DNA of 64,000 bases from Macrostomum lignano (GCA_002269645.1 NIVC01000200.1:310001-374000); one strand, 5' to 3'. Shown: positions 1 through 48,954, numbered from the stretch's first letter. The notes: generated from the letters alone by a model not told the origin. Translations and numbers: made by a program.

Positions 1-736
1 CATCTCTCCTAAGCACAGCTCTCCTGAGCACATCTCTCCTGAGCACATCTCTCCTAAGCACAGCTCTCAGCCCTCATCGCCTTCTCTCTCCCCACTCATT
101 TCTCAGCCAGCAGTCTCCATTGTTACTGCAGGCCGCTCTGCACACGCGAGCTTCATCGCACAGCTGCTGGCAAAGTACACCAGACCGCAGGCTGCACACA
201 CAGAAACGGAATGAGAGGCGCAGAGACTGCAGAGCTAAGCTGAGTGCAGCAGGAGTTGCCAGCCAGACCAACTCGGTCTCCGATGCACATTTCCAACATC
301 GAATAGCTCGAAATTCGAATTTCGCACCGCTGCACAGACAAACAAAGTTAAATTAATAATTATCTGCAATCGAAAACTCACCCAGAACAGGTACCAGTGT
401 GTGCTCAGTAATTTCTCAGACTGAGCATTCTTGCAGCTGCAGAGATGCAATTCTGTGACCTGCGATACTGGCACCGATTCAAAGTGTGTGGCACACTGGC
501 TTTTGCAGAGCTCAGCACCCTTGCACTGGCAGCAGAGGATACTCAGCCCAGAATTCCTTGATCGGCACTGAACTCTCTGACTCGAAATCTGACTGCATTT
601 CGCATTTGACAGGTGAGTCGGTTTCTGTTCTCCCCCTGTTCTCCTCTGTTCTCCCTCTATTCCGACTCTTCTCCCTCTTCTTACCCTAAGGCGTTTCAAC
701 TTTTTCTGATTTCAGCTCTTCAAAGGCAATCCAACA

Positions 737-2386
737 ATGAGCCGCAAAAGCACCAGCGACAGCTCGAGTTCGGAAGCGCCTCCCGCTACCCCAACTCCTC
801 TCTGCATCATCTGCGACCAAGCTGCAGTCGGTGTGGCTCCGTTCTCCCTCTCCCACATGTGCAGTCAGCACCTCAGTGTCGATGTGGCCAATCTATTCAA
901 GCTCAAGGAGGAGGTCGATGAGCTGCTGCGTGCCTACTCACAAGAGTCGCAAGAGTCGCAAGGCGCAGCAGGTGCAGCTGGCCGTGCAGCGCTGCTGCGA
1001 CACCGACAAGACGCTGAGTCGCTGCGTCGTCTCGCTCTCGACATCCAACAGCAGCTGCAAGACGTCAATCACAAATTCGATTTGGTACAGCAACACATCG
1101 ACTCGTTTCGTAGCAGGGTGACGGGCCAGCTCTCAGGTGTGCTTGAGTCAGTCCGTGTGTGCGAGCGGGACCTCGAGGACGTCTCCAGCTACAAGCAGGA
1201 GGTGGCCACGGCCGAGGCTGCAGGCGACATGGCGGAGCTGCTTCGCCTGGTCCAGTCCATGCACGAATCGCTTGGAGACTTGGAGGCCGACTTTGAGAGG
1301 TCAGAGCGCCTGCTCAGAGACCAGCGCGACAATGAGGAGCTGCAGCTGCGGCTTCTGGGCCAGCTCGAGCGGCTGGTCGGCATTTGTGCGGGACGCAGTG
1401 AAGAGGGCGACTGGTCGAGAGACGCTGCGGTGACTGCGACATCCGAGGAGATAGACAGAGATATAGCTGCTCAGAGAGAGAGACTTTTGGAGCCGATGGT
1501 CTTCAGTCACGATGTGAAGCTGGATGACGATCCTGCATTGCTGGCTGTGTGCAGCGACACCAGCGGATTCGTTGGTAACCTCTCAGGCCGTGTGGTTCCC
1601 GCCGACTCAGCGGGAGACTGCAGCAAAACTCTGCCTCAACCCTGCATCATTGCATCATTCTATCTGAACAGAGACCACCTACTGCTGCTGTCTGTGAACG
1701 GCTCACAGAAGCTGCGGTGCCACTGCGACATCGACTGGAAGCAGTGCATCCGTGGCCTTCACTGCGACCGTCAACTGCTGTTTATTGCTCAGGATGACGC
1801 AGTGACAGTGACGGACCTGAGCGGTCGCAAGGTGCGTCGAGTCCGCCCACACATCGAGGGCTTCGGTGCCATCAGTGGAATCGGCGGCAACGCAGCCTCC
1901 GTGTTTGTGTCTAGTGGAAACAAAATTGCTGCATTCAGCAAAGCGACTTGGCAGATTGAGACGGTCATCACGCTGTCTCAGCTTCCTAATGCTAATCTGC
2001 ACAGCCTGACGACTCACGACAACTGCATTCTGGTGGCAGACTGGAAGCACAATCAGGTGCACAGAGTGTGCATCGACACCCAGCAGCTGGTCGCCTCCTT
2101 CCCGACTCAGCGTTCCGGCCTCCAACGCTTTGCTGATCTATTGGATGTGGCCGTCGACAGCAGAGGCCGCCTGTTCGTGAGTGAATGTTCGGGTTACTCA
2201 GTGCGAGCGGTGGCTGCAGACGACGGGTCGCTGCTGTGGACTCTGGGGACTCCGGGCGAGAGCGGCAGCGGAGACGGCAGATTCAGGGGTCCATGGGGTC
2301 TGGCGGTGGTGACGGGAGGTCCGCACGAGCAGCTGGTGGTGGCTGACTGTCCCGCCGACAGACTGCAGGTGTTCAGTGCATCCTAA
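737..2386 (+). CDS. TRIM-NHL-like protein copy a (degenerate B-box, coiled coil, NHL beta-propeller; no RING), intact, 549 aa
   Basis: Intronless ORF starting at ATG. N-terminal CIIC...HMCSQH, long heptad-rich region, C-terminal NHL repeats (DVAVDSRGRLFVSE; GSGDGRFRGPWGLAV...LVVAD...RLQVF). Probable 5' UTR intron 613-715 (gtgagt...tttcag). Confidence 0.8.
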   Translation: MSRKSTSDSSSSEAPPATPTPLCIICDQAAVGVAPFSLSHMCSQHLSVDVANLFKLKEEVDELLRAYSQESQESQGAAGAAGRAALLRHRQDAESLRRLALDIQQQLQDVNHKFDLVQQHIDSFRSRVTGQLSGVLESVRVCERDLEDVSSYKQEVATAEAAGDMAELLRLVQSMHESLGDLEADFERSERLLRDQRDNEELQLRLLGQLERLVGICAGRSEEGDWSRDAAVTATSEEIDRDIAAQRERLLEPMVFSHDVKLDDDPALLAVCSDTSGFVGNLSGRVVPADSAGDCSKTLPQPCIIASFYLNRDHLLLLSVNGSQKLRCHCDIDWKQCIRGLHCDRQLLFIAQDDAVTVTDLSGRKVRRVRPHIEGFGAISGIGGNAASVFVSSGNKIAAFSKATWQIETVITLSQLPNANLHSLTTHDNCILVADWKHNQVHRVCIDTQQLVASFPTQRSGLQRFADLLDVAVDSRGRLFVSECSGYSVRAVAADDGSLLWTLGTPGESGSGDGRFRGPWGLAVVTGGPHEQLVVADCPADRLQVFSAS

Positions 2387-3657
2387 AATTATTCACAGGC
2401 CAAATAATAATAATCGATTTTTGGGGTTTCTGGAGTAATTGATTTGTTGGATACTGGGTATTTTTGATTGTGTTTATTGAAACAAATTTAAACTTGGATA
2501 ACCTTTTTGTCTAATAACTGTTTATTATGTCCATTATATTCAGAATAAATATTTATTGAATAGAAGCACATTTACCATTACGTATGTACTAATAAAAATA
2601 AACGTTGGCCCTCAACACTTCTCTCACGGTCTTTTTTTTTCTTGAAGTTTCAGCAGCAGAAATTGGTACCTGATTGTTAAATTGAATTTCAGCAAAAATG
2701 GCATGCAGTTTGCTAAAATTCTCCTCACTCGCTGCAGACTCAGCGCTCGCTTCTGTGTTGCATTTTCCTCAATGGTTTCCTGCTTTGCCTTTTATAGCAT
2801 GGCATAGGTAGCTTTAGCCATGGTAATAAATATTTGACTAGCTTTCAACCTGAGACTGCAGCAGTAGGCGTTCTACCCGTCTGGCTCCTGCTACGAGACC
2901 GGCTTTCCAGCTTCTGTTTTGTGGTGAGGGTGTGAGGCTTTTGTATTTTTCACGCAACCACCCTGGGCGGCTTGTCTCGTACGATAAATAGACGAACGCG
3001 AATACAACTTTTACTGTGCTGTTTATTCTGTAGGCTCTTGGGCTGAGCTCTTCTATATAGAATACTGCAGTGCTGGCTTCTTTCTTGACTTTGTCTTATG
3101 AGGGAATGTCACATGGTTTAACAGTGAATAGGTTTTACATGAAAAAGTTCCACAGTGAATGGGGATCTGAGCAGTTAATATAATGATGGAGATGGACACC
3201 TAAGCAAGATGTCGGTTTTGACCCTCGCACGGAGGTCAAGGGTGAGTCGAACACGGGCCAGTTGTGAGAAATGGATTAAAATCAGCTACGGCATGACACG
3301 CGAACAACGGGCGGCCTTGACCTGTCCTTGACCGGCGTCGCCAAACCAGCAAATGACGTCACCTGCTTAGCAGCGCTGTGATTGGCTAGAAAAATGTGGA
3401 GGGGTTGGGAAACAAGTCACGTGATTATTGATGGGAATAGGTTACGGAGATCGGGGTAAACAATGCTGATCTAAAGGTCAGGGTGGGGTGGGTGTACGTG
3501 ATGAGTGATTGATGATTCATCGGGAAAAGGGGCTTGGGATCCCTGAGTTGGGACCATGCAGGGTCGCGTCTACAATTGGGGCTCTTTAACAGTGAAAATG
3601 AATGAGTGGCTGCCAAAACCGCTGCTGCATCAGAAGCTGAGGGACTTTAACTGACTT

Positions 3658-3925
3658 CATGCTGTATAGCGACTGTGGCATGATTGCCAATCACACATGC
3701 TGCATAGCGACTGTGGCATGATTGCCAATCACACATGCTGCATAGCGACTGTGGCATGATTGCCAATCACACATGCTGCATAGCGACTGTGGCATGATTG
3801 CCAATCACACATGCTGCATAGCGACTGTGGCATGATTGCCAATCAGACATGCTGCATAGCGACTGCGGCGTGATTGCCAATCACACATGCTGCATAGCGA
3901 CTGCGGCGTGATTGCCAATAAGACA
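3658..3925. repeat. 38-bp tandem repeat, ~7 copies (~8 copies at 15833-16138)
   Basis: catgctgcatagcgactgtggcatgattgccaatcaca, head to tail with no spacers. Confidence 0.9.
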
Positions 3926-4047
3926 TGACAGCAGCTGATTGATCGAATCGCGGGAGTAGAGGCGAAGTCAGAATTTTTCATTTGGTTGGGATGCCAGATT
4001 TTGTCTGTTAAGAGCTGGATTGGTACAAAACAATATACATAAAAATA

Positions 4048-4250
4048 TATCGCCAGTGCATTTAGTGTGTTCGCTAGAAATGGGATTTTTCTCCACTAAA
4101 TTTGTCTGCCGTGAGTTGGCTGCAGAAGAAGACCTTCAAACCTTCGAACATTGCGGCGTCACGTCTTCCACCGCATCCTGGGCGATCCTGCGAGCACTTT
4201 AAAGCATTGAAACACCGTTTCTCCTGAGCATGCTAAATGCACTGGCGATA
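4048..4250. mobile_element. MITE-like element, 203 bp (second copy 16261-16463)
   Basis: 18-bp perfect inverted repeat tatcgccagtgcatttag; the outer TA could be a Tc1/mariner-type TSD. Confidence 0.5.
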
Positions 4251-4847
4251 CGGCAGATCTACGTTTCTACAGCGGGCTTAATCGGCTTGGCTGTCGCTCA
4301 TGCTGCATCAGAGTGCAGCTTCCTCTCCCATTCCAGTGCAGACTTAAAGCCGGCGGGACATACAGCAGAACAGCGATACAGTGCAGTCAGTAGCAGAGCC
4401 AGTGTACAGCCCGTACCGCAATATGAATGGAAAGTACTGAACAGGGCGGCTCTCTGCCCGCTGAGTACAGCAAACTGGAGATAAAGAATCTGCGATGCTC
4501 AATGCCTGCACAGGGCAGACAGACTGGGAGAGAGGAGCTGCATTGTCATTGCGACAGGCTGCTCAGCTCCCCACTATGACCACCTGAGCAGCTTTGGCTG
4601 ATTTGAATTTTGAATCATTATAAAAAACATTTTCTCTAAAATAATCAATAAAAACAAAATTCAACCTCGTCTGACAGCTTTTACTCTACGTAATTTAATT
4701 TAATATTAACATCAAGTTGACATCAAAACAACTGCGCAACCGTTTCCTTGGAAGAGGGCACCGATTGAAGCAGATCTGACTGTGTTTCGCTTTGTGGAAA
4801 CTCTGCATTGAAAAGAATTTTCTAAATAGAAAACTCCCTGACAAACA

Positions 4848-6510
4848 ATGAGTCTTGGAGACTCCAGCGACAGCTCGAGTTCGGACGCGCCTCCCGCTTC
4901 CCCAACTCCTCTCTGCATCATCTGCGACCAAGCTGCAGTCGGTGTGGCTCCGTTCTCCCGCTGCCACATGTGCAGTCAACACCTCAGTGTCGATGTGGCC
5001 AATCTATTCAAGCTCAAGGAGGAGGTCGATGAGCTGCTGCGTGCCTACTCACAAGAGTCACAAGAGTCACAAGACTCACAATGCGCAGCAGATGCAGCTG
5101 GTCGTGCAGCGCTGCTGCGACACCGACAAGACGCTGAGTCGCTGCGTCGTCTCGCTCTCGACATCCAACAGCAGCTGCAAGAGGTCAATCACAAATTCGA
5201 TTTGGTACAGCAACACATCGACTCGTTTCGTAGCAGGGTGACGGGCCAGCTCTCAGGTGTGCTTGAGGCAGTGCGTGTGTGCGAGCGGGACCTCGAGGAC
5301 GTCTCCAGCTACAAGCAGGAGGTGGCCACGGCGGAGGCTGCAGGCGACATGGCGGAGCTGCTTCGCCTGGTCCAGTCATGCACGAATCGCTTGGAGACTT
5401 GGAGGCCGACTTTGAGAGGTCAGAGCGCCTGCTCAGAGACCAGAGCGACAATGAGGAGCTGCAGCTGCGGCTTCTGGGCCAGCTCGAGCGGCTGGTCGGC
5501 ATTTGTGCGGGACGCAGCGAAGATCAGGGTGACTGGTTGAGAGACGCTTCGGTGACCGCGACATCCGAGGAGATTGATGCTGCTAAGAAAAAGAGAATGT
5601 TGGAGCCGATGATCTTCAGTCATGAGGTGAAGCTGGATGACCGTATTGCATGGCTGGCTGTGTGCAGCGACACCAGCGGATTCGTTGGTGACCGCTCAGG
5701 CCGTGTGGTTCCCGCCGATAATGAAGGAGACGGCAGTGAGGCTCTGCCTCAGCCATGCGTCATTGCATCATTCCTTAGGAATAAAGACCACCTACTGGTG
5801 CTGTCTGTGTGCTGTCTGTGGACGGCTCACAGAAGCTGCGGTGCCACTGCGACATCGACTGGGAGAAGGTCATCCGTGGCCTTCACTGCGACCGTCAGCT
5901 GCTGTTCATTGCTCAGCCTGGCGCAGTTACAGTGACGGACCTGAGCGGTCGCACGGTGCGTCGAGTCCGCCCACACATCGAGAGCTTCAGTGACATCAGG
6001 GGAATCGGCGGCAACGCAGCCTCCGTGTTTGTGTCCAGTGGAAACAAAATTGCTGCATTCAGCAAAGCGACTTGGCAGATGGAGACGGTCATCACGCTGT
6101 CTCAGCTTCCTCGTGCTGATCTGGGCAACCTGGCGACTCTCGACAACTGCATTCTGGTGACAGACTTGGAGAATGATCAGGTGCACAGAGTGCGCATCGA
6201 CACCCAGCAGCTGGTCGCCTCCTTTCCGACTCAGCGTTCCGGCCTCCAACAGTTTGTTTGGCCATATGATGTGGCCGTCAACAGCAGAGGCCGCCTGTTC
6301 GTGAGTGAATGGTTGGGTCACTCAGTGCGAGCGGTGGCTGCAGACGACGAGTCGCTGTTGTTGACTCTGGGGACTCCGGGCAAGAGCGGCAGCGGAGACG
6401 GCAGATTCCAGTATCCACTGGGTCTGGCGGTGGTGACGGGAGGTCCGCGCGAGCAGCTGGTGGTGGCTGACAGAAACAACAGGAGATTGCAGGTGTTCAG
6501 TCCACCCTAA
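4848..6510 (+). pseudogene. TRIM-NHL-like copy b, two frameshifts
   Basis: Paralogue of 737-2386 split over three frames (4848, 5279, 5809). A 1-nt loss (cagtcatgc vs cagtccatgc, ~5377) and an 11-nt tandem duplication of gtgctgtctgt (~5797-5818). Confidence 0.75.
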
Positions 6511-6734
6511 TTTTGTTCACAGGCGGATTAATAATCGAACTTTGCGGCTTCTGGAGTGATTGATTTATTGGAGGCCGGGTTTTTTGTCGAATTTCTCTTA
6601 TTATGGAATTTAATATGTTAAGACCTTTTTGTACATGTACTTATACATGTATTAAGTAATTATAACAAAATTACGTTGGCGCTAAACAATTCTCTCATTG
6701 TGTGTCGTTTTCCGACTGACTGTCTCCTATTCTA

Positions 6735-7015
6735 GCATTAAGCAGCATCAGCGTCCTTGTCTCTCATCAGCTCCATCAACACCCAGTCTCTCTCATCAGC
6801 TCCATCAACACCCAGTCTCTCATCAGCACCATCAACACCCAGTCTCTCATCAGCTCCATCAACACCCAGTCTCTCATCAGCTCCATCAACACCCAGTCTC
6901 TCATCAGCTCCATCAACACCCAGTCTCTCATCAGCTCCATCAACACCCAGTCTCTCACCAGCTCCATCAACACCCAGTCTTCCATCAGCTCCATCAACAC
7001 TCAGTCTCCATCTGC
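6735..7015. repeat. 27-bp minisatellite (longer copy at 19445-19940)
   Basis: tctcatcagctccatcaacacccagtc units. Confidence 0.9.
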
Positions 7016-7410
7016 CCAGAATTCATCCCCATTGAGTTCAAAGTCAAAAACAAGTAGAGAAAACAATTTTTACATTTTTGATTGACAATATTTGAGTAAT
7101 CAGATTTACTAGTAAAATATTTCTGAGTGGGATAAAGCGGATTTATTTTGATTATTCGAAATTCAGATTAAAGTTCGACTTTGTCACCAACAACTTGAAG
7201 GTGAATTGCAGAAAGGCAGGTATAAAATGATCAGTTTTAAGGCAAAGACAGTCACTGATTTGGTGCAGTGCGGTACATCAGAATTCGCTAACAGCTGAGG
7301 GCGCAATTTCAAAGGGCGGTGCAGCACAGAAGAGCAGAGAGGAGGACTGACGGCTGCAGTCACTGCCGCTGTGGGCTGTCAAATTTATGAGCTGCAGCTG
7401 AGCATCCTTG

Positions 7411-8285
7411 TCAGTCCACCTTGGCGATCTCCACCATCCTGCCGGCATTGAGGATTTCAATCCAGTAGCCGTCAGGGTCCAGAATGAAGGCGAGGCCCTT
7501 CATCTTGCCGTCGTCCGGCTTCTTGGCGAACTTCACGCCGAGTCGCTCGAAACGCCTGCAGGCCTCGGCGACATCCGGGACGCTGATGCCGATGTGGCCG
7601 AAGCCGCGGGGGTCCGAGTTGCCGTTGTGGTAGGCCTGGCAATGGGATTAGTGTGGGATGGCAATGGGATTAGTGTGGGATGGCAATGGGACTGGTGTGG
7701 GACGGCAATGGGATTGGTGTGGGATGGCAATGGGATTGGTGTGGGATGGCAATGGGATTGGGACATTGGGACTCAGCAGTCCAGACACTGGGACTCAGCA
7801 GTCCAGACAATGGGACTCAGCAGACCAGACACTGGGACTCAGCAGTCCAGACACTGGGATTCAGCAGTCCAGACACTGGGATTCAGCAGTCCAGACACTG
7901 GGACTCAGCAGTCCAGACATTGGGACTCAGCAGTCCAGACACTGGGATTCAGCAGTCCATGAACACACACCTGGTCAGGGTCAGACTCTGTCCCATAGTT
8001 GTGCGTCAGCTCCACAGTCCCCGGCAGCCTGAACAGGTAGGCGATGCGCTCCGTGTCGCCCTTAGGAATGCTGGCCTCCTCAGCGTAGCCCATGAAGTAC
8101 AGCGAGAACGCCATGCTGGGGAAGTCGAACTTGCCGAGCAGCCGCATCCCCAGCACTGAGGAATAAAAGTCCAGCGACCGGCGAGGGTCCTTGACTCGCA
8201 GCATCGTCTGCTGCATGATGAAGCCGCTGGTCTCGGGCGGTGGCGGCTTGCACAGAGCGGCGAGCTCAGATTTTGATAGGGCCAT
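7411..8285 (-). CDS. GLO1: Lactoylglutathione lyase (glyoxalase I), copy 1; exons 8285-7971 and 7635-7411; 179 aa
   Basis: [44 protein letters not shown] and DPDGYWIEI match glyoxalase I. GT-AG phase-0 intron joins DQ|AYHNG. Confidence 0.93.
7637..7959. repeat. Two abutting 22-bp minisatellites filling the GLO1 intron (expanded at 20556-21494)
   Basis: gggattggtgtgggatggcaat array followed by gggactcagcagtccagacact array. Confidence 0.92.
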
Positions 8286-8344
8286 GATTGATTGACAGGT
8301 GACAGCTGGTTGCCAGGTGGGGGATTGGGGTTGGGATTGGAGTG

Positions 8345-8688
8345 CTGAATGTGACTGATTGGCATCTGAATATGGCACTGACTGACACTTGAATATGGCA
8401 CTGATTGACACCTGAATATGACAATGATTGACACCTGAATATGGCACTGATTGACACCTGAATATGGCACTGACTGACACCTGAATATGGCACTGATTGA
8501 CACCTGAATATGGCACTGATTGACACCTGAATATTGCACTGACTGACACCTGAATATGGCACTGATTGACACCTGAATATGGCACTGATTGACACCTGAA
8601 TATGGCACTGATTGACACCTGAATATGGCACTGATTGACACCTGAATATGGCACTGATTGACACCTGAATATAGCACTGACTGACACT
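8345..8688. repeat. 23-bp minisatellite upstream of GLO1 (also 21882-22245)
   Basis: ctgaatatggcactgattgacac units. Confidence 0.92.
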
Positions 8689-9606
8689 AATTATGCTAAC
8701 AATTATCAAATAAATTGAACACTCAAGGCTTCAGTTTCGCAGTCGCACTGAAGCAAGGAAAATCTTCCCCCAAGCTGCAGTTGCTGCCCAGATGCAGCCA
8801 CAGCTCGCATGCCAATTTGTATTCAGACTCACCGGCACTGCAGCAATGCGATGGCCGATTGGCTATAATTGACAGGCAACAGAAATCATGCACTGGTATT
8901 GCTCAGCTTTTGACAGAATGCATGAAAATTACAGTAAGGAAAACGCTACTGACTACTAACAGTGGTAGGGAAGTGACACACCAGCTTAGAAACCTACCGC
9001 AAATTAAAGTACATTCGGAGACTAAATGATGAGAACAATATCAATATGAAAACTTAAACTAATGCAAAGGGACTGGGGTATTCAACAACAGACATGCATA
9101 TTGAGAACAACTGAAGGTCAATTATTCAAGCCTCTTAGTTGAAAAGTTGCTACTGTTAGTAACAAAACAGTAGCAAAGTACATAATGTACTTATAGATGA
9201 TAACTTTGACTGACTTACAAAAATCATAACAGCATTTGTGGCTGATGGGTTAAGCTGCAGATACAGGAGGATGTGCTTGAAATATTTAATGACTTATGAG
9301 CTGTTAAAATGCACTGAATCTTTATTAAGCATTCGGGACTGAGTGACATGAATATTAGGGTTTCTGAGGCTAAGATTAGTCTATCAGATGATCCACAATC
9401 TGGTCACACATCTATCAGATTATCCTCAATCTGGTCACAGATCTATCAGATGATCCACAATCTGGTCACAGATCTATCAGATGATCCTCAATCTGGTCAT
9501 AGATCTATCAGATTATCCACAATCTGGTCACACATCTATCAGATGATCTACCAGCCAATATCCAACAGAAACTGGGCCACAGCAGTCCCCACTGCACCCC
9601 ACAAGA

Positions 9607-11079
9607 TCACCAGTTTTCGTGACCGCCGCTGCCGCCACCGCGCGGAAAGCCGCCGTACCGAGCGAGTCTGGGGTCCGCGCCGCTGGGCTGGCGGGACTGC
9701 GGCTGAGGCTGCGGCTGCTGCTGGGCTGGCAAAGTGGGCAGCGGAGGCAGAGACGGACCGCCGCCACCTCCAGCACCTCCCGCACCTGCGCCACTTCCGC
9801 CACCCCGCTGCCGCCGAAGAGCGAGTCGAGAGCCTTCTGAATCTGGCCAATATTTGGCTGGGGAGGCTGCTGCTTGGACTGATGAGGCTGAGGCTGCTGG
9901 CCAGCCGCACCAGCCGCTGCCGGATTCAATAAGCTGAGAATTTTTGCCTGCAAGTCGGCTTGCTGCTGCAGAATGCTGGCTGCTGCGGCTGCTGGGGCTG
10001 CCGGCTGCTTCTGCTGCTCTGGCGTTCTCTGAGGCGCCTGATGGTGGGGCTGATGAGGATGCTGAGGCTGCTGAGGATGCTGAGGATGCTGGCTTTGATG
10101 AGGCGGAATATTGGGATTGGAACGATTATGCTGCAGCATCGTTATTGGATGAAGCTGAGCCGGCTGGTGCTGATGTTGCTGGTGCTCATGATGCTGTGGT
10201 GGATTCTGAGGAAGCTGGCCAATGGACTGGTTTGACGCAAAGGAAACTGGAGCACCCGATTGATGATGGCTGGAGTCTGGAATGTAATGTTGGAAAGCGG
10301 ATTTGAGACCATGCTCAAGGGGATGGTGGATTTGAGATTACTTTCAAGGATGGCGAATTTGATTTGCGAAGTTCAAAAACTTTCACAGGCAGCTCATTAC
10401 CCTTCGTGAGCAGCCCATGTCGGTGAGCTAAGCACCCAACTTACAGCTCTTATCCTTCACGGAGCCGGCAGAAGCCCCGCCAGCCGCTCCCGCCTGGCCG
10501 CAATGAACTCGGCCAGCTCGTCCAGCTCCCGGCCGCTGAGCATCCGATGATCGGCCAGCAGGTGCAGCAGGTGCATCAGAGAGAAGCCGGAGGCGGCAGC
10601 TCGCGAAGGTCGCGAAGCACCGTCTCGAAATGACGGCCCAGCATGGACTGGGCGTCGTCTATGGGCATGTTGCGGTGCTCTGCGGGGGGTGGCGAGTCTT
10701 CGAGATGGCAGCTAAATGTCGGGACTCTCTGGCTCTTCCCGCAGTCTGTCTGTCTCTTCCCGCTGTCTACCTGTCTCTTTTTCTTTTATCTACCTGTCTC
10801 TTTTACTCTTTATCTTCTAATTCTCTCTTTACGTCTCAATTGGACTACTACTAGTAACACCCATCTCTAGACTCACCAAAGGGCTGCTGGCCATAGAAGA
10901 TTCTAACAGTACACGATTGGTGCATCTCATTCTGCCGATTCAACAGCACAGCGTAGAGCACGCCAGTCCTGGCCAGATCCTCCATAGCCAACGGCATTAG
11001 CGATTCGTGTTTGAGCACGATTAGATTAGTGCTCAGGGAGAGCCGGTTTAACCGGCGTTCGACACTTTCAGCATAGGGC
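9607..11079 (-). pseudogene. NCOA5: NCOA5 partial duplicate: exons 2-4 only, frameshifted
   Basis: Exon 2 (11079-10877) is intact. Exon 3 (10679-10445) is 59 nt shorter than in the intact copy and gives an early TGA. Exon 4 has a 1-nt loss in the Gly-rich tail. No exon 1 before unit B begins. Confidence 0.8.
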
Positions 11080-11190
11080 CTGCTGCGTGGTGTTGAATGA
11101 AAACTTTCTTAGCATTTGCATGTATTAAATTAGTTTCATGGATCAGCTGGAGGGGATAGACTAGCTCAAAAGTCACGCGTCCAGCTGGGA

Positions 11191-11525
11191 GAAGCTGTAG
11201 ACCAGTGGTCTGGCGCGGCGCTCTGATGTTTCACCGGCCCAGGCTCGATTCCAAGAGCAGTCACATTAATTCGGGGCTAAATTAGAATCTCGAATCGGTC
11301 CTGCTCGTGCAATTAACGCGTTTGAGGGCCAACCCTAAGGAACAGTGAAGTGTACATGCCTAACGATCAATACAGTTAGGGCTGCTGTGCACTCCTGAGA
11401 GTGTGTGCCTGTGCTTATGACTGCGTTCGCCTCCACGCGCTCGCTTGTGTGCCTCCTACTCAGGGGAGTCAGCGGCGTTAGCAGTCGTACTTAAAACTAA
11501 ACAGACTGCCGATATGTATCGTAAT
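11191..11525 (+). mobile_element. tRNA-derived SINE, copy 1
   Basis: A-box-like tagaccagtgg and B-box-like ggctcgattcc; body shared with the copies at 25922 and 63730. Confidence 0.7.
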
Positions 11526-12903
11526 ATATTTATAGAATCTACTTATATAGAGCTACTTGATAATCGTATAACTTATTCAAAATCGACACCTAATACGTTC
11601 GTAATACGGTGTTCCAAAAGTAAAAGGGGCCCCATAGTAGCTTCTAAACTTAAAAATTATATACACGCACATGTATATGGGCCAAGCAGTTATGTAAAGT
11701 TTGGGCTCTCAGTCGAATACTTAAAAGAATCTATCAGGCAGAACTTGAAGCCCAGTTTCTGCAGTGCAACGCTTACTTCAACCTAAATTATCTTGGTCAC
11801 AAACTCTAACCAGAGCCGTGGTTTAAAAGCATTTTACTGGTGCCTAAAGTTAGCACATTGTTTCGTTCTGTTTCTGAGTTGAGTTCTGAGTGAAATACTG
11901 AAATGAGTTACAGTTTTTCACGTTTCTGTATCCAAATACCCGTTGGAAAATGATTTATTGCGGAAAATTGGACTGTGCGTCTGGTTGTCGTTTCGTTACT
12001 ATGTGGGTAAATTTGACTGTCCTAACTGCTTTGGAAGGATATTTCCTTATAGAAGGGCTAATAAATTTCTTTTCCAGACCGGTCTCTATCGAACTTATTG
12101 CATCCGCGTCAAAGTATTCGATTTGTCAATTTCAAGACGATGATTAGCGGAAGGCTCAGGATTAAAAAGTATTAGTCGCATGCGAATTCTTAGTTGGCAG
12201 CCGAATATAAAACTCTTATACACCTCTCCTGAGCACACCTGCCGCACCTACTCTCTCCCCACTCATTTCTCAGCCAGCAGTCTTCATTGTTACTGCAGGC
12301 CGCTCTGCACACGCGAGCTTCATCGCACAGCTGCTGGCAAAGTACACCAGACCGCAGGCTGCACACACAGAAACGGAATGAGAAGCGCAGAGACTGCAGA
12401 GCTCAGCTGAGTGCAGCAGGAGTTGCCAGCCGGACCAACTCGGTCTCCGATGCACATTTCCAACATCGAATAGCTCGAAATTCGAATTTCGCACCGCTGC
12501 ACAGACAAACAAAGTTAAATTAATAATTATCTGCAATCGAAAACTCACCCAGAACAGGTACCAGTGTGTGCTCAGTAATTTCTCAGACTGAGCATTCTTG
12601 CAGCTGCAGAGATGCAATTCTGTGACCTGCGATACTGGCACCGATTCAAAGTGTGTGGCACACTGGCTTTTGCAGAGCTCAGCACCCTTGCACTGGCAGC
12701 AGAGGATACTCAGCCCAGAATTCCTTGATCGACACTGAACTCCCTGACTCGAAATCTGACTGCATTTCGCATTTGACAGGTGAGTCGGTTTCTGTTCTCC
12801 CCCTGTTCTCCTCTGTTCTCCCTCTATTCCGACTCTTCTCCCTCTTCTTACCCTAAGGCGTTTCAACTTTTTCTGATTTCAGCTCTTCAAAGGCAATCCA
12901 ACA

Positions 12904-14562
12904 ATGAGCCGCAAAAGCACCAGCGACAGCTCGAGTTCGGAAGCGCCTCCCGCTACCCCAACTCCTCTCTGCATCATCTGCGACCAAGCTGCAGTCGGTG
13001 TGGCTCCGTTCTCCCTCTCCCACATGTGCAGTCAGCACCTCAGTGTCGATGTGGCCAATCTATTCAAGCTCAAGGAGGAGGTCGATGAGCTGCTGCGTGC
13101 CTACTCACAAGAGTCACAAGAGTCACAAGACTCACAATGCGCAGCAGATGCAGCTGGTCGTGCAGCGCTGCTGCGACACCGACAAGACGCTGAGTCGCTG
13201 CGTCGTCTCGCTCTCGACATCCAACAGCAGCTGCAAGAGGTCAATCACAAATTCGATTTGGTACAGCAACACATCGACTCGTTTCGTAGCAGGGTGACGG
13301 GCCAGCTCTCAGGTGTGCTTGAGGCAGTGCGTGTGTGCGAGCGGGACCTCGAGGACGTCTCCAGCTACAAGCAGGAGGTGGCCACGGCGGAGGCTGCAGG
13401 CGACATGGCGGAGCTGCTTCGCCTGGTCCAGTCCATGCACGAATCGCTTGGAGACTTGGAGGCCGACTTTGAGAGGTCAGAGCGCCTGCTCAGAGACCAG
13501 AGCGACAATGAGGAGCTGCAGCTGCGGCTTCTGGGCCAGCTCGAGCGGCTGGTCGGCATTTGTGCGGGACGCAGCGAAGAGGGCGACTGGTCGAGAAACG
13601 CTGCGGTGACTGCGACATCCGAGGAGATAGACAGAGATATAGCTGCTCAGAGAGAGAGACTTTTGGAGCCGATGGTCTTCAGTCACGAGGTGAAGCTGGA
13701 CGGCCTTGTTGAGTGGCTGGCTGTGTGCAGCGACACCAGCGGATTCGTTGGTGACCGCTCAGGCCGTGTGGTTCCTGCCGAGTCAGCGAAATACGGCAGA
13801 AAAACTCTTCCTCAGCCCTGCATCATTGCATCATTCTATTCCAACGAGGATCACCTACTGGTGCTGTCTGTGGACGGCTCACAGAAGCTGCAGTGCCACT
13901 GCGACATCGACTGGACGGAGTACATCTGTGGCCTTCACTGCGACCGTCAGCTGCTGTTCATTGCTCAGGATGACGCAGTGACGGTGACGGACCTGAGTGG
14001 TCGCGCAGTGCGTCGAGTCCGCCCACACGTCAAGGGCTTCGGTAAAATCAGGGGAATCGGCGGCAACGCAGCCTCGGTGTTTGTGTCCAGTAGAAACAAA
14101 ATTGCTGCATTCAGCAAAGCGACTTGGCAGATGGAGACGGTCATCACGCTGTCTCAGCTTCCTCATGCTGATCTGCACAACCTGGCGACTCACGACAGCT
14201 GCATTCTGGTGACAGACTGGATGCACAATCAGGTGCACAGAGTTCGTATCGACACCCAGCAGCTGGTCGCCTCCTTCCCGACTCAGCGTTCCGGCCTCCA
14301 ACAGTTTGCTCATCCATGGGATGTGGCCGTCGACAGCAGAGGCCGCCTGTTCGTGAGTGAATTTTCGGGTTACTCAGTGCGAGCGGTGGCTCCAGACGAC
14401 GGGTCGCTGCTGTGGACTCTGGGGACTTCGGGCGAGAGCGGCAGCGGAGACGGCAGATTCAGGGGTCCATGGGGTCTGGCGGTGGTGACGGGAGGTCCGC
14501 GCGAGCAGCTGGTGGTGGCTGACTGTACCAACAACAGACTGCAGGTGTTCAGTGCATCCTAA
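12904..14562 (+). CDS. TRIM-NHL-like copy a', intact, 552 aa
   Basis: Intronless ORF with the same architecture and 5' region as 737-2386, offset 12167 bp. Confidence 0.8.
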   Translation: MSRKSTSDSSSSEAPPATPTPLCIICDQAAVGVAPFSLSHMCSQHLSVDVANLFKLKEEVDELLRAYSQESQESQDSQCAADAAGRAALLRHRQDAESLRRLALDIQQQLQEVNHKFDLVQQHIDSFRSRVTGQLSGVLEAVRVCERDLEDVSSYKQEVATAEAAGDMAELLRLVQSMHESLGDLEADFERSERLLRDQSDNEELQLRLLGQLERLVGICAGRSEEGDWSRNAAVTATSEEIDRDIAAQRERLLEPMVFSHEVKLDGLVEWLAVCSDTSGFVGDRSGRVVPAESAKYGRKTLPQPCIIASFYSNEDHLLVLSVDGSQKLQCHCDIDWTEYICGLHCDRQLLFIAQDDAVTVTDLSGRAVRRVRPHVKGFGKIRGIGGNAASVFVSSRNKIAAFSKATWQMETVITLSQLPHADLHNLATHDSCILVTDWMHNQVHRVRIDTQQLVASFPTQRSGLQQFAHPWDVAVDSRGRLFVSEFSGYSVRAVAPDDGSLLWTLGTSGESGSGDGRFRGPWGLAVVTGGPREQLVVADCTNNRLQVFSAS

Positions 14563-17066
14563 AATTATTCACAGGCCAAATAAATAATCGATTTTTGGGG
14601 TTTCTGGAGTAATTGATTTGTTGGAGACTGGGTATTTTTGATTGTGTTTATTGAAACAAATTTAAACTTGGATAACTTTTTTGTCTAATAACTGTTTATT
14701 ATGTCCATTATATTCAGAATAAATATTTATTGAATAGAAGCACATTTACCATTACGTATGTACTAATAAAAATAAACGTTGGCCCTCAACACTTCTCTCA
14801 TGGTCTTTTTTTTTCTTGAAGTTTCAGCAGCAGAAATTGGTACCTGATTGTTAAATTGAATTTCAGCAAAAATGGCATGCAGCATGCTTAAATTCTCCTC
14901 ACTCGCTGCAGACTCAGCGCTCGCTTCTGTGTTGCATTTTCCTCAATGGTTTCCTGCTTTGCCTTTTATAGCATGGCATAGGTAGCTTTAGCCATGGTAA
15001 TAAATATTTGACTAGCTTTCAACCTGAGACTGCAGCAGTAGGCGTTCTACCCGTCTGGCTCCTGCTACGAGACCGGCTTTCCAGCTTCTGTTTTGTGGTG
15101 AGGGTGTGAGGCTTTTGTATTTTTCACGCAACCACCCTGGGCGGCTTGTCTCGTACGATAAATAGACGAACGCGAATACAACTTTTACTGTGCTGTTTAT
15201 TCTGTAGGCTCTTGGGCTGAGCTCTTCTATATAGAATACTGCAGTGCTGGCTTCTTTCTTGACTTTGTCTTATGAGGGAATGTCACATGGTTTAACAGTG
15301 AATAGGTTTTACATGAAAAAGTTCCACAGTGAATGGGGATCTGAGCAGTTAATATAATGATGGAGATGGACACCTAAGCAAGATGTCGGTTTTGACCCTC
15401 GCACGGAGGTCAAGGGTGAGTCGAACACGGGCCAGTTGTGAGAAATGGATTAAAATCAGCTACGGCATGACACGCGAACAACGGGCGGCCTTGACCTGTC
15501 CTTGACCGGCGTCGCCAAACCAGCAAATGACGTCACCTGCTTAGCAGCGCTGTGATTGGCTAGAAAAATGTGGAGGGGTTGGGAAACAAGTCACGTGATT
15601 ATTGATGGGAATAGGTTACGGAGATCGGGGTAAACAATGCTGATCTAAAGGTCAGGGTGGGGTGGGTGTACGTGATGAGTGATTGATGATTCATCGGGAA
15701 AAGGGGCTTGGGATCCCTGAGTTGGGACCATGCAGGGTCGCGTCTACAATTGGGGGCTCTTTAACATTGAAAATGAATGAGTGGCTGCCAAAACCGCTGC
15801 TGCATCAGAAGCTGAGGGACTTTAACTGACTTCATGCTGTATAGCGACTGTGGCATGATTGCCAATCACACATGCTGCATAGCGACTGTGGCATGATTGC
15901 CAATCACACATGCTGCATAGCGACTGTGGCATGATTGCCAATCACACATGCTGCATAGCGACTGTGGCATGATTGCCAATCACACATGCTGCATAGCGAC
16001 TGTGGCATGATTGCCAATCAGACATGCTGCATAGCGACTGCGGCGTGATTGCCAATCACACATGCTGCATAGCGACTGCGGCGTGATTGCCAATCACACA
16101 TGCTGCATAGCGACTGCGGCGTGATTGCCAATAAGACATGACAGCAGCTGATTGATCGAATCGCGGGAGTAGAGGCGAAGTCAGAATTTTTCATTTGGTT
16201 GGGATGCCAGATTTTGTCTGTTAAGAGCTGGATTGGTACAAAACAATATACATAAAAATATATCGCCAGTGCATTTAGTGTGTTCGCTAGAAATGGGATT
16301 TTTTTCCACTAAATTTGTCTGCCGTGAGTTGGCTGCAGAAGAAGACCTTCAAACCTTCGAACATTGCGGCGTCACGTCTTCCACCGCATTCTGGGCGATC
16401 CTGCGAGCACTTTAAAGCATTGAAACACCGTTTCTCCAGAGCATGCTAAATGCACTGGCGATACGGCAGATCTACGTTTCTACAGCGGGCTTAATCGGCT
16501 TGGCTGTCGCTCATGCTGCATCAGAGTGCAGCTTCCTCTCCCATTCCAGTGCAGACTTAAAGCCGGCGGGACATACAGCAGAACAGCGATACAGTGCAGT
16601 CAGTAGCAGAGCCAGTGTACAGCCCTACCGCAATATGAATGGAAAGTACTGAACAGGGCGGCTCTCTGCCCGCTGAGTACAGCGAACTGGAGATAAAGAA
16701 TCTGCGATGCTCAATGCCTGCACAGGGCAGACAGACTGGGAGAGAGGAGCTGCATTGTCATTGCGACAGGCTTCTCAGCTCCCCACTATGACCACCTGAG
16801 CAGCTTTAGGCTGATTTGAATTTTGAATCATTATAAAAACACATTTTCTCTAAAATAATCAATAAAAACAAAATTAAACCTCGTCCGACAGCTTTTAATC
16901 TACGTAATTTCATTTAATTTTAACATCAAGTTGAGATCAAACACAAAGTTCTGCGCAGCCGTTTCCTTGGAAGAGGGCACCGATTGAAGCAGATCTGACT
17001 GTGTTTCGCTTTGTGGAAACTCTGCATTGAAAAGAATTTTATAAATAGAAAACTACCTGACAAACA

Positions 17067-18829
17067 ATGAGTCTTGGAGACTCCAGCGACAGCTCGAGTT
17101 CGGACGCGCCTCCCGCTTCCCCAACTCCTCTCTGCATCATCTGCGACCAAGCTGCAGTCGGTGTGGCTCCGTTCTCCCGCTGCCACATGTGCAGTCAGCA
17201 CCTCAGTGTCGATGTGGCCAATCTATTCAAGCTCAAGGAGGAGGTCGACGAGCTGCTGCGTGCCTACTCACAAGAGTCAAAAAACTCAAAAGACTCAAAA
17301 GACTCACAAGACTCACAAGACTCACAAGAGTCACAAGACCACCAAGAATCACAAGAGTCACAAGAATCACAAGACTCACAAGACTCACAAGAGCCACAAG
17401 AGCCACAAGGCGCAGCAGGTGCAGCTGGCCGTGCAGCGCTGCTGCGACCAAGACAAGACGCTGAGTCGCTGCGTCGTCTCGCTCTCGACATCCAACAGCA
17501 GCTGCAAGAGGTCAATCACAAATTCGATTTGGTACAGCAACACATCGACTCGTTTCGTAGCAGGGTGACGGGCCAGCTCTCAGGTGTGCTTGAGGCAGTG
17601 CGTGTGTGCGAGCGGGACCTCGAGGACGTCTCCAGCTACAAGCAGGAGGTGGCCACGGCGGAGGCTGCAGGCGACATGGCGGAGCTGCTTCGCTTGGTCC
17701 AGTCCATGCACGAATCGCTTGGAGACTTGGAGGCCGACTTTGAGAGGTCAGAGCGCCTGCTCAGAGACCAGAGCGACAATGAGGAGCTGCAGCTGCGGCT
17801 TCTGGGCCAGCTCGAGCGGCTGGTCGGCATTTGTGCGGGACGCAGCGAAGAGGGCGACTGGTCGAGAGACGCTGCGGTGACTGCGACATCCGAGGAGATA
17901 GAGATATAGCTGCTCAGAGAGGGAGACTTTTGGAGCCGATGGTCTTCAGTCACGAGGTGAAGCTGGACGGCCTTGTTGAGTGGCTGGCTGTGTGCAGCGA
18001 CACCAGCGGATTCGTTGGTGACCGCTCAGGCCGTGTGGTTCCTGCCGAGTCAGCGAAATACGGCAGAAAAACTCTTCCTCAGCCCTGCATCATTGCATCA
18101 TTCTATTCCAACGAGGATCACCTACTGGTGCTTTCTGTGGACGGCTCACAGAAGCTGCAGTGCCACTGCGACATCGACTGGACGAAGTACATCTGTGGCC
18201 TTCACTGCGACCGTCAGCTGCTGTTCATTGCTCATGTTGATGCAGTGACAGTGACGGACCTGAGCGGTCGCGCGGTGTGTCGAGTCCGCCCACACATCGA
18301 GGGCTTCGGTTACATCAGGGGAATCGGCGGCAACGCAGCCTCCGTGTTTGTGTCCAGTGGAAACAAAATTGCTGCATTCAGCAAATCGACTTGGGAGATG
18401 AAGACGGTGATCACGCTGTCTCAGCTTCCCGATGCTGATCTGCGCAACCTGGCGACTCACGACAGCTGCATTCTGGTGAGAGACAGGAAGCACGATCAGG
18501 TGCACAGAGTGCGCATCGACACCCAGCAGCTGGTCGCCTCCTTCCCGACTCAGAGTTCTCACCTTAAACAGTTTGTTTGGCCATGGGATGTGGCCGTCGA
18601 CAGCAGAGGCCGCCTGTTCGTGAGTGAATTGTGGGGTCACTCAGTGCGAGCGGTGGCTCCAGACGACGGGTCGCTGCTGTGGACTCTGGGGACTCCGGGC
18701 GAGAGCGGCAGCGGAGACGGCAGATTCAGGGGTCCATGGGGCCTGGCGTTGGTGACGGGAGGTCCGCGCGAGCAGCTGGTGGTGGCTGACAGAGGCAACA
18801 GGAGACTGCAGGTGTTCAGTGCATCCTAA
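17067..18829 (+). pseudogene. TRIM-NHL-like copy b', frameshifted, expanded SQE/SQD linker
   Basis: Two overlapping ORFs (17067-17909, 17831-18829). 4-nt deletion at ~17900 (gagatagagatatag vs gagatagacagagatatag). Confidence 0.72.
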
Positions 18830-20329
18830 TTTTGTTCACAGGCCGAATAGTAATCGAAATGTGGGGTTTCTGGAGTGATTGATTTATTGTAGGCCGGGTT
18901 TTTGAGTACAATACTGATGGAATTTTTAATATGTGATGACCTTCTTTGTCTGATAATTGTTTATCTTGCCAGTGAATTCATAACTGATATTTACTGATTA
19001 GAAATTAATAAACATGCATATTTAAAGTAATTAATTTACCCTGAAAAAAACTTAAATAGCACGTATTTCATACTTAATTGATTAAATAATTAAATTAAAC
19101 TTACTTTATACTTTTTACAATGGGTCACTGCTTTGGGTTAAATATGTATAGGCACACGTGTTTTTAGCTTTGGAACGTAGAAATTGATGTGCGAGCAGAG
19201 CACAATTTTCATGTATTGTACATCAAGGCGCTGTCAGAAACTCCGGATGCACTCATCAGCTTTGTGTGAAAAGTAAATGAAAGTCTTTGTAGAGATGACG
19301 GATAAAAAGTACAAATCTTATAGGGCTCTGATGCAGATTAGAAGCTGGCTGCCTGCAAAATGCCTTAAACTGGAGTAGATCTAATCATAGAGATCTAGAA
19401 TTCAGGGACTGCATGAGCTTCATAACTCGTTAATCTCTGGTGCTGCTCCATCAATTCCCAGTCTCTCATCAGCTCCATCAACACCCAGTCTCTCTCATCA
19501 GCTCCATCAATTCCCAGTCTCTCTCATCAGCTCCATCAACACCCAGTTTCTCATCAGCTCCATTAACACCCAGTCTCTCATCAGCTCCATCAACACCCAG
19601 TCTCTCATCAGCTTCATCAACACCCAGTCTCTCATCAGCTCCATCAACACCCAGTCTCTCATCAGCTCCATCAACACCCAGTCTCTCATCAGCTCCATCA
19701 ACACGAAGTCTCTCATCAGCTCCATCAACACCCAGTCTCTCTCATCAGCTCCATCAACACCCAGTCTCTCTCATCAGCTCCATCAACACCCAGTCTCTCT
19801 CATCAGCTCCATCAACACGAAGTCTCTCATCAGCTCCATCAACACCCAGTCTCTCATCAGCTCCATCAACACCCAGTCTCTCACCAGCTCCATCAACACC
19901 CGTCTCTCATCAGCTCCATCAACACAGTCTCCATCTGCCCCGAATTCATCCCCATTGAGTTCATAGTCAAAACCAAGTAGAGAAAACAATTTTTAAATTT
20001 ATGATTGACAATATTTTGAGTAATCACATTTATTAGTAAAATATTCCACAGTGGGATAAAGTGGATTTATTTTGATTATTCGGAATTCAGATTAAAGTTC
20101 ACCTTTGTCACCAACAACTTGAAGGTGAACTGCAGAAAGGCAGGTATAAAATGATCAGTTTTAAGGCAAAGACAGTCACTGATTTGGTGCAGTGTGGTAC
20201 ATCAGAGTTCGCTAGCAGGTGAGGGCGCAAAGGGCGGTGCAGCACAGAAGAGCAGAGAGGAGGACTGACGGCTGCAGTCACTGCCGCTGTGGGCTGTCAG
20301 ATTTATGAGCTGCAGCTGAGCAGTCCTTG

Positions 20330-21820: not shown

Positions 21821-22941
21821 GATTGATTGACAGGTGACAGCTGGTTGCTAGGTGGGGGATTGGGGTTGGGATTGGAGTGCTGAATGTGACTGACTGACAC
21901 CTGAATATGGCACTGATTGACACCTAAATATGGCACTGACTGACACCTGAATATGGCACTGATTGACACCTGAATATGACACTGATTGACACCTGAATAT
22001 GGCACTGATTGACACCTGAATATGGCACTGATTGATACCTGAATATGACACTGATTGACACCTGAATATGGCACTGATTGACACCTGAATATGGCACTGA
22101 TTGATACCTGAATATGGCACTGACTGACACCTGAATATGGCACTGATTGACACCTGAATATGGCACTGATTGACACCTGAATATGGCACTTATTGACACC
22201 TGAATATGGCACTGATTGACATCTGAATATGGCACTGATTGACACTAATTATGCTAATAATTATCAAATAAATTGAACACTTAAGGCTTCAGTTTCACAG
22301 TCGCACTGAAGCAGGGAAAAATCTTCCTACAAGCTGCAGTTGCTGCCCAGATGCAGGCACAGCTCGCATGCCAATTTGTATTCAGACTCACCGGCACTGC
22401 AGCAATGCGATAACCGATTGGCTGTGATTGACAGGCAACAGAAATCATGCACTGGTATTGCTCAGCTTTTGACAGAATGCATGAAAATTACAGTAAGGAA
22501 AACGCTACTGACTACTAACAGTAGCAGGGAAGTGACACACCAGCTTAGAAACCTCTCGCAGATTAAAGTACATTTAGACACTAATTAATGATGAGAACAG
22601 TATCAATATGAAAACTTAAACTAATGCAAAAGGACTGGGGTATTCAACAACAGACATGCATATTGAGGACAAATGAAGGTCGATTATTCAAGCCTCTTAG
22701 TTGAAAAGTTGCTACTGTTAGTAACAAAACAGTAACAAAGTACATAACGTACTTATAGATGATAACTTTGACTGACTTACAAAAATCATAACAGCATTTG
22801 TGGCTGATGGGTTAAGCTGCAGATACAGGAGGATGTGCTTGAAATATTTAATGACTTATGAGCTGTTAAAATGCATCGAATCTTTATTAAGCATTCGGGA
22901 CTGAGTGACATGAATATTAGGGTTTCTGAGGCTAAGATTAG

Positions 22942-23482: not shown

Positions 23483-23540
23483 TACCAGCCAATATCCAAC
23501 AGAAACTGGGCCACAGCAGTCCCCACTGCACCCCACAAGA

Positions 23541-45983: not shown

Positions 45984-48954
<2,971 letters not shown>

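Follow-up and report, generated by a model that had tools for sequence, protein, structure and literature searches.

The window analyzed here, a 64,000-nucleotide stretch of one strand of the Macrostomum lignano genome (GCA_002269645.1, contig NIVC01000200.1, positions 310001-374000, with which it is 100% identical), carries a tandem array of paralogous single-exon genes whose products combine a coiled coil with a C-terminal NHL β-propeller. Site-specific positive selection is strongly supported in the propeller and falls on the loops of one face, and tracts of sequence have been exchanged between neighboring paralogs. Given these features, it is likely that the genes represent a diversified recognition family whose variable top face has been shaped by selection together with gene conversion, a description that we offer in evolutionary and structural terms. 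Unless another locus is named, all positions are counted from the first nucleotide of the window.

An earlier note on this DNA had placed four copies of the gene in the window and had proposed that they encode RING-less TRIM-like sensors under diversifying selection. All four copies were located, each on the plus strand. Copy a (737-2386) is an intact single-exon open reading frame (ORF) of 549 amino acids, with a B-box-like Cys/His motif at residues ~23-45, a coiled coil at ~43-250, and the NHL propeller from residue ~254 (window ~1496-2383). Copy a′ (12904-14562) is an intact ORF of 552 amino acids whose propeller comprises residues 257-552 (13672-14559). Copy b (4848-6510) is frameshifted by a 1-nucleotide deletion after position 5376, in a CC run, and by an 11-nucleotide tandem duplication at 5798-5808, GTGCTGTCTGT, and copy b′ (17067-18829) is frameshifted by a 4-nucleotide deletion after 17899. 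With the frame repaired, b and b′ contain no in-frame stop codons; either their inactivation is recent or some of the indels are assembly errors. The 11-nucleotide duplication is common to copy b and to an upstream copy, b″ (10001-11664 of locus L001, in whose coordinates the part shared with the window is 29708-54269), and thus predates that duplication and is probably real. Introns were excluded as an explanation for the frameshifts because the indels are of only 1, 4, and 11 nucleotides. A GenBank gene model in this region, BOX15_Mlig004830g1 (P0001, 552 amino acids), is chimeric, with an N-terminal half of the b type and a propeller that matches copy a at 100%, and extends 34 kb over several paralogs (L001 10001-44269).

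Selection on one face of an NHL propeller

The prediction in the earlier note that the C-terminal domain is an NHL propeller agrees with Pfam analysis, with sequence searches of the PDB, and with AlphaFold modeling followed by Foldseek comparison. In Pfam searches, NHL repeats (PF01436) at the C terminus were the sole hits above the cutoff of 20 bits (a, 23.4; a′, 38.6; P0003, 29; P0005, 39.9), with the motif picking up just one or two of the six blades. In sequence searches of the PDB, the NHL domains of Thin, TRIM71, TRIM3, and TRIM2 scored best, and propeller identity to TRIM-NHL proteins is only 16-20%. An AlphaFold model of a′ (madc1fbde1418), built from 12 family members, has a predicted local distance difference test score (pLDDT) of ~85-95 across the propeller, and Foldseek ranks the NHL domains of Thin, TRIM71, TRIM2, TRIM3, and Brat highest, with template modeling (TM) scores of 0.70-0.80. 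For the entries 6xg7, 6d69, 7qrx, 9jur, 8j72, and 7b2r, the TM (target) scores are 0.76-0.80 at root-mean-square deviations of 3.0-3.8 Å. DSSP assigns 26 strands to the model, which we read as 24 plus a hairpin, and a seven-bladed arrangement was dropped because the Foldseek matches are six-bladed NHL domains. As modeled, the C-terminal domain is a six-bladed NHL propeller.

The region preceding the propeller resembles that of TRIM proteins in part. A coiled coil of ~200 amino acids follows the B-box-like motif and also gives weak coiled-coil-type Pfam matches; the a′ model places long helices at residues 43-76, 83-165, and 168-221 with a pLDDT of just 50-70. The motif itself (C23-x2-C26-x12-C39-H40-x-C42-x2-H45, with Ser at residue 39 in both a and a′) supplies five to six zinc ligands, whereas a B-box has eight. 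It is the sole Cys/His cluster, the ORF starts ~22 residues ahead of it, and UniProt labels relatives of these proteins “B box-type domain-containing,” presumably from the PROSITE profile. RING domains are absent from all 13 paralogs examined, with no Pfam RING hit at E≤10. Thus, the “RING-less TRIM-like” description in the earlier note is fair for the architecture with respect to the missing RING, but its B-box is degenerate and lacks a Pfam hit; membership in the TRIM family is a prediction from sequence. No signal peptide was found in the family proteins, which are predicted to be cytoplasmic. A low-complexity SQ[ED] repeat lies between the B-box-like motif and the coiled coil and differs in length among all paralogs, including an in-frame expansion in copy b′ (17277-17386) that adds ~36 amino acids.

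Selection was examined with 13 full-length paralogs from six loci of the same assembly, nine of them intact, which were codon-aligned. In this alignment, the N-terminal half is near invariant and the propeller has discrete hypervariable patches, and the same hypervariable positions return in copies on three other contigs. It also contains each of the variant sets that the earlier note had listed among the window copies, namely DDPAL/DRIAW/GLVEW, KQCIR/EKVIR/TEYIC, GAIS/SDIR/GKIR/GYIR, DWKHN/DLEND/DWMHN/DRKHD, ADLL/VWPY/AHPW/VWPW, ECSGY/EWLGH/EFSGY/ELWGH, and CPAD/RNNR/CTNN/RGNR.

Site models were applied to the 309 propeller codons, using five categories for the beta model. With one ratio of nonsynonymous to synonymous substitution (ω, or dN/dS) for the entire propeller (model M0), ω is 1.07. 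When a class of positively selected codons is permitted, the log-likelihood (lnL) changes from -4297.84 under M1a to -4146.06 under M2a (2ΔlnL = 303.6; ω2 = 8.97, p2 = 11.6%) and from -4313.06 under M7 to -4148.20 under M8 (2ΔlnL = 329.7). The result holds when six partitions of the alignment are fitted with separate trees and branch lengths (2ΔlnL = 234.7; ω = 9.35; p = 15%), and when the nine intact copies are analyzed alone (2ΔlnL = 259.6). Parsimony counts give a similar picture. Synonymous changes per codon have a mean of 0.44 and a variance of 0.46, as expected of a Poisson-like process, whereas nonsynonymous changes have a mean of 1.33 and a variance of 4.91, with 152 codons showing none and 27 codons showing five or more; such clustering greatly exceeds what chance would give. 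This combination of Poisson-like silent changes with overdispersed replacements argues against mutational hotspots and against uniform relaxation. Per-site binomial tests similar to SLAC have no power with 13 sequences (best p 0.04) and were used only in aggregate. The diversifying selection proposed in the earlier note is therefore strongly supported by the site models (M1a/M2a and M7/M8), by which about 11-15% of propeller codons are estimated to evolve under site-specific positive selection with ω≈9.

According to the M2a posteriors, 25 codons have P(ω>1) > 0.9. In copy a′, they span positions 13705-14535 on the plus strand and specify residues 268, 270, 296, 301, 312, 313, 315, 340, 342, 356, 383, 421, 423, 437, 439, 440, 470, 472, 487, 488, 520, 521, 541, 542, and 544; their counterparts in copy a start at positions from 1529 to 2357. 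The DSSP strands of the a′ model strictly alternate along the chain, and positions 1-28 of the NHL profile correspond to residues 519-549, in which “GLAVV” is strand βa, “QLVVAD” is βb, and “RLQVF” is βc. This register, combined with the strand alternation, identifies the loops of one parity as the b-c and d-a loops. By definition, these loops form the top surface of an NHL domain, and it is with this surface that Brat binds RNA (PMC4015489).

The b-c and d-a loops account for 84 of the 309 codons but hold 19 of the 25 selected sites (Fisher p = 1.4e-7), in accord with the earlier assertion that changes cluster in top-face loops. Another four selected sites are the first or last residues of strands that adjoin top loops. 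Treated as an a priori structural class, the top loops have a dN/dS of 1.26 by the NG86 method or 1.43 by parsimony counts, and the excess over 1 is significant even with invariant residues included (binomial p = 0.017). The corresponding values are ~0.6 for strands and 0.3-0.6 for bottom loops. Among the 13 copies, 5.2 kinds of residue occur per selected site compared to 1.6 elsewhere, and three amino acids are overrepresented at the selected sites: Arg (17% compared to 6%), Trp (8% compared to 1.5%), and Tyr (5% compared to 0.3%). A composition rich in these three amino acids is typical of binding hot spots. The Arg excess is the one hint that the top surface may be electropositive and bind RNA.

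We propose that the genes constitute a Macrostomum-specific tandem multigene family that would evolve by birth and death with frequent gene conversion. The N-terminal half, near identical at silent sites as well, would be kept as a common scaffold or dimerization module by homogenization and purifying selection. Within the propeller, some 25-45 codons of the b-c and d-a loops, which form the canonical ligand-binding top face, are under strong diversifying selection (ω≈9). New propeller variants would arise both by point substitution at the selected sites and by patchwise exchange with neighboring copies, frameshifted ones included. With the stalk constant, the shape of the top face would thus differ from one paralog to the next, and the family as a whole would offer a range of binding specificities. 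If TRIM-NHL proteins are a guide, the ligand may be RNA, or else protein.

The most economical reason for such a selection regime would be an arms race with a virus, a transposon product, or some other fast-evolving partner. However, a specifically antiviral or anti-transposon role, which the earlier note had raised, is a hypothesis that we hold only tentatively. A driver other than defense, for example reproductive or sexual conflict, allorecognition, or coevolution with endogenous RNAs or proteins that evolve fast (including regulatory transcripts of germline or transposon origin), would account for the same evolutionary evidence by true diversifying selection. In M. lignano, a simultaneous hermaphrodite, many fast-evolving genes are related to reproduction, a circumstance that would favor such a driver. 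In addition, the known TRIM-NHL proteins act not as immune sensors but as post-transcriptional regulators in stem cells and the germline (PMC4015489). Conversely, the lack of a signal peptide makes a secreted gamete or seminal role unlikely, and the present evidence does not distinguish the selective agent. A nondefense driver is therefore possible, but we would be cautious in favoring it.

A more elaborate proposal is that the proteins form an intracellular NHL recognition repertoire comparable to TRIM5 or the finTRIMs, with specificities assembled by conversion, frameshifted copies serving as donor cassettes, viruses or transposons as the selecting agents, and coiled coils that heterodimerize. 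We consider this full combination rather unlikely. If true, the invariant coiled coil would let paralogs heterodimerize and their specificities would multiply combinatorially.

Exchange between paralogs and competing explanations

The divergence between copies a and a′ was measured from a global alignment of the two tandem units. Differences occur at 7 of 657 positions (1.07%) in the 5′ flank, 11 of the first 750 coding nucleotides (1.5%), which encode the N-terminal portion, 75 of 900 (8.3%) in the propeller, and 24 of 2458 (0.98%) in the 3′ flank (2387-4847). The encoded propellers differ at 48 amino acids, and the N-terminal halves differ by seven substitutions and one indel of 3 amino acids, with ~3 of these differences inside the coiled-coil core. 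These counts match the 45-50 propeller changes and ~3 coiled-coil changes reported earlier. Likewise, the 3′ flank was correctly described as carrying only scattered differences, and with proper alignment it is not as diverged as the coding region. A 38-bp minisatellite in this flank has one copy more or fewer between units.

The earlier note had taken the excess of coding over flanking divergence as an indication of selection. The contrast is real, but the inference drawn from it does not stand. In the a/a′ propeller comparison, dS is 0.088 and dN is 0.089 (ω = 1.0), and silent sites are thus diverged ~9-fold more than the flank. Selection on amino acids cannot be the cause of this silent divergence, and because dS equals dN, the difference between coding and flanking sequence is not by itself evidence of selection. 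The raised silent divergence of the propeller, the frameshifts in b and b′, and a third unit upstream of the window (see below) are all points beyond those that the note had made.

Evidence for exchange was obtained by applying a Sawyer-type runs test to 424 polymorphic sites in the 13 paralogs. Copies a′ and b′ agree at 111 polymorphic sites in a row (p<0.0005). This conversion tract in a′ (13598-13865, plus strand), which differs from b′ 17869-18132 by one mismatch and a 4-nucleotide deletion, takes in the linker plus ~65 codons at the start of the propeller, encompasses 29 of the 75 a/a′ propeller differences, and is preceded by near-identity that reaches upstream to ~13181. The test also detects matches of a′ to b over the N-terminal half and of a to b′ over the linker (p<0.0005 in each case). 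The first of these includes an exact match of 398 nucleotides between a′ (13036-13433, plus strand) and b (4980-5377), which lies within a longer shared N-terminal tract.

The other 46 propeller differences between a and a′ fall into four classes. Specifically, 23 involve states common to other paralogs (21 of them replacements, largely within top loops). Copy a alone accounts for 13 (10 nonsynonymous and 3 synonymous) and copy a′ alone for 7 (2 nonsynonymous and 5 synonymous), and the remaining 3 are common to a′ and b′ only. The copy a propeller carries ~18 substitutions that are absent from 11 other paralogs. The shared tracts and these classes of differences indicate that the island of a/a′ divergence consists mainly of imported paralog sequence plus recurrent change at a few sites. 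Thus, the contrast between coding and flanking divergence mostly reflects exchange between paralogs.

Exchange has affected the two halves of the gene differently. Among intact copies, mean dS is 0.040 in the N-terminal half compared to 0.136 in the propeller, and the flanks of a-type and b-type copies cannot be aligned past ~100 nucleotides. The low N-terminal value suggests that the DNA of this half has been homogenized, presumably through conversion, whereas the propeller has remained diverse. One possible reason is that homogenizing conversions in the propeller are selected against.

Given the extent of this exchange, it might be proposed that gene conversion or mosaicism alone is responsible, such that both the hypervariability and the site-model signal are artifacts of exchange among old paralogs and of N-terminal homogenization. 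The highly significant tracts, the equal rise in silent and replacement divergence between a and a′, and the star-like trees are all consistent with this explanation, and mosaicism can indeed generate false positives. For example, four data sets simulated under M1a on six trees and then analyzed with one tree yielded 2ΔlnL values of 0.2-16.4. However, the observed values are 235-330 and remain high with six independent trees, indicating that mosaicism inflates the test by an order of magnitude too little. Furthermore, M0 yields an ω of only 0.42-0.48 for the simulated data, compared to 1.07 for the actual propellers. Conversion also carries silent and replacement changes together, and cannot produce Poisson-like silent changes alongside 3.7-fold overdispersed replacements confined to one face. 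Conversion without selection is therefore an improbable explanation. The likelihood-ratio tests also gave nominally significant values for the N-terminal half (21.1) and for the coiled-coil core (10.5), which we judged to be false positives of the mosaic type and discounted; the first value takes in the gappy columns of the SQ[ED] repeat.

Another explanation, to which we assign a still lower probability, is relaxed constraint in a decaying family, wherein copies are redundant or becoming pseudogenes and their loops tolerate any residue, driving ω toward 1. The frameshifts among the sampled copies and the domain-wide ω of about 1 would be expected in this case. However, neutral loops would have an ω of 1 rather than ~9, and M2a surpasses M1a, which already includes a class with ω = 1, by 150 lnL units. 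Bottom-face loops are just as exposed as those on the top face, yet show the low ω values given above, and the strands and coiled coil are likewise constrained. In addition, nine copies retain ORFs of 540-565 codons and the frameshifted copies are free of stops after repair. Finally, the notion that the units and their differences result from misassembly or faulty polishing of collapsed paralogs or haplotypes in a repeat-rich PacBio assembly is barely credible despite the abundance of repeats, the homopolymer location of the 1-nucleotide deletion in b, and the chimeric gene model, because the differences are base substitutions gathered at specific codons, the same positions vary on three other contigs, and the 99% identity of the unit flanks indicates little polishing noise.

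Several points nevertheless weigh against the interpretation of these genes as a recognition family diversified by selection and conversion. Domain-wide, the propeller dN/dS is only about 0.9-1.07. Recombination inflates site-model tests (up to 2Δ = 16), a problem controlled here by partitioning and four simulations, and the maximum-likelihood calculations were made with our own GY94/F3x4 code instead of codeml or HyPhy. The faces were assigned by strand order and NHL motif register, not by model coordinates, and 2 of the 25 selected sites are in a long loop (292-305) whose face is ambiguous. Frameshifts affect two of the four copies in the window and 4 of the 13 that were sampled; thus, the array does not consist of four working receptors, and part of the variation resides in genes that are probably dead. 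The Cys/His motif gives no zf-B_box hit in Pfam at E≤10. Lastly, the sole GenBank model touching the window copies is the chimera described above, and copies a and a′ lack models of their own.

The array and its surroundings

Self-BLAST comparison of the window reveals a tandem segmental duplication with a unit of ~12.2 kb. Each unit contains two paralogs of the single-exon gene on the plus strand, a spliced glyoxalase I gene on the minus strand, and several minisatellites. Unit 1 (80-11411, plus strand) includes copies a and b, and unit 2 (12247-26142, plus strand) includes copies a′ and b′ together with minisatellites that are expanded. The segments 80-3927 and 12247-16102 are 97.1% identical, the segments 3658-5078 and 15871-17297 are 97.7% identical, and further matching blocks reach up to 11411 vs. 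26142. The array goes on upstream of the window, where L001 contains a third unit and one more copy.

The glyoxalase I gene of unit 1 (7411-8303, minus strand) is spliced, encodes 185 amino acids, and matches the Pfam Glyoxalase family. Its unit 2 counterpart (~20330-21838, minus strand) was duplicated with the 12-kb unit. This gene is a passenger of the duplication and is outside the receptor family. Minisatellites of 22 and 23 nucleotides occur in and next to it, and minisatellite copy numbers differ strongly from unit to unit, as with GACACTGGGACTCAGCAGTCCA, which is present in 9 vs. 28 copies.

The genome is very repeat-rich, and large satellite arrays occupy window positions 30548-32832, 26532-27513, 47633-48577, and 3658-3927 / 15833-16140. 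The satellites of the window include a 24-nucleotide unit in 97 copies with a strong purine skew, a 30-nucleotide unit in 32 copies, and (AGAC)n of ~945 bp. The gene array has a G+C content of ~50%, and blocks of very low G+C content (26-32%) are found at 36000-42000 and 54000-60000. Downstream of the array are exons of single-copy genes at 51444-53738 (minus strand), 47941-49236 (minus strand), and 43369-44244 (plus strand), which correspond to Ro60 (TROVE and Ro60 vWA domains), an FMN-dependent dehydrogenase, and a caspase-domain protein.

Other family members are arranged differently. On another contig of the same assembly (L004), a pair of genes is inverted, with one at 10004-11695 on the plus strand and the other at 21124-19454 on the minus strand, and locus L006 is arranged likewise. 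The inverted pairs of both loci are spaced by ~8-10 kb, and one L006 copy is interrupted by an insertion of ~2.6 kb. These pairs suggest that there are several independent small clusters, and possibly represent homeologous loci from a recent genome duplication.

Relation to known families and significance

Full-length relatives found in protein libraries of 5.8 billion and 1.8 billion sequences are all from M. lignano, except for a few on unassigned metagenome contigs of 1-2 kb. There are at least nine more subfamilies at about 30% identity, which are likewise clustered on contigs. The other library matches are giant multi-NHL proteins, most likely bacterial, that align over one to three blades and are uninformative on the history of the family. 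Our literature search uncovered no report on NHL or TRIM genes in Macrostomum and none mentioning this family's gene identifiers.

The closest matches in sequence and fold are the TRIM-NHL proteins (Brat, LIN-41/TRIM71, TRIM2/3, Thin/TRIM32, Mei-P26, and NHL-2), in which a six-bladed NHL propeller similarly follows a coiled coil. In contrast to those proteins, the M. lignano family lacks the RING and filamin domains and has a degenerate B-box. Moreover, it is tandemly amplified, species-restricted, and positively selected, whereas canonical TRIM-NHL genes are few and conserved, numbering three to five per species (PMC4015489) and belonging to the conserved “group 1” of TRIM genes, with a Ka/Ks of ~0.13 (PMC2533329).

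In its mode of evolution, the family resembles TRIM5α, TRIM22, and the fish finTRIM/btr genes of “group 2.” These also form clustered, lineage-specific expansions on a constant scaffold, either the RBCC module (RING plus B-box plus coiled coil) or the coiled coil, and variable loops of their C-terminal recognition domain are under positive selection (PMC2533329, PMC3503706). However, the recognition domain of TRIM5α, TRIM22, and the finTRIMs is SPRY/B30.2 and is joined to a RING E3 module, whereas the M. lignano proteins have an NHL domain and no RING. The SPRY-containing groups are also restricted to vertebrates and some have a demonstrated antiviral function, whereas any such function of the M. 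lignano family is putative. The evolutionary regime is that of TRIM5α, TRIM22, and the finTRIMs, operating here on the NHL scaffold, which is conserved in the animals studied to date.

A second parallel can be drawn with the fungal HET-E/NWD proteins, whose WD40 β-propellers have hypervariable binding-face positions under positive selection, and in which exchange among repeats and paralogs creates new combinations. Those fungal proteins differ from the M. lignano family in that their propellers are WD40 rather than NHL, exchange occurs among repeats within a gene, and the architecture is NLR-type with a NACHT domain. Expansions of B-box and NHL-repeat orthogroups have been described in bivalves and corals (PMC8382680; bioRxiv 10.1101/2024.08.16.607823), and the portions of these reports that concern the expansions give orthogroup counts only, without site-level selection, face mapping, or conversion analysis. 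Our literature search turned up no such report for flatworms.

Our findings carry a caution for the study of young duplicates, since gene conversion can make the coding sequences of two such genes more diverged than their flanks, and such a difference alone is no sign of selection. NHL-containing TRIM-like proteins are known from textbooks as developmental regulators that evolve slowly, whereas the known arms-race TRIM proteins carry SPRY/B30.2 domains and are restricted to vertebrates. If our interpretation is correct, the NHL propeller has independently become a diversified surface for recognition in a lophotrochozoan, by way of tandem amplification, shuffling by conversion, and binding-face loops evolving at ω≈9. 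Innate immunity and genome defense in flatworms are poorly known, and this family provides concrete candidate receptors in a model species that is capable of transgenesis. The paralogs also supply a natural series of NHL top-face variants with which ligand specificity may be studied.

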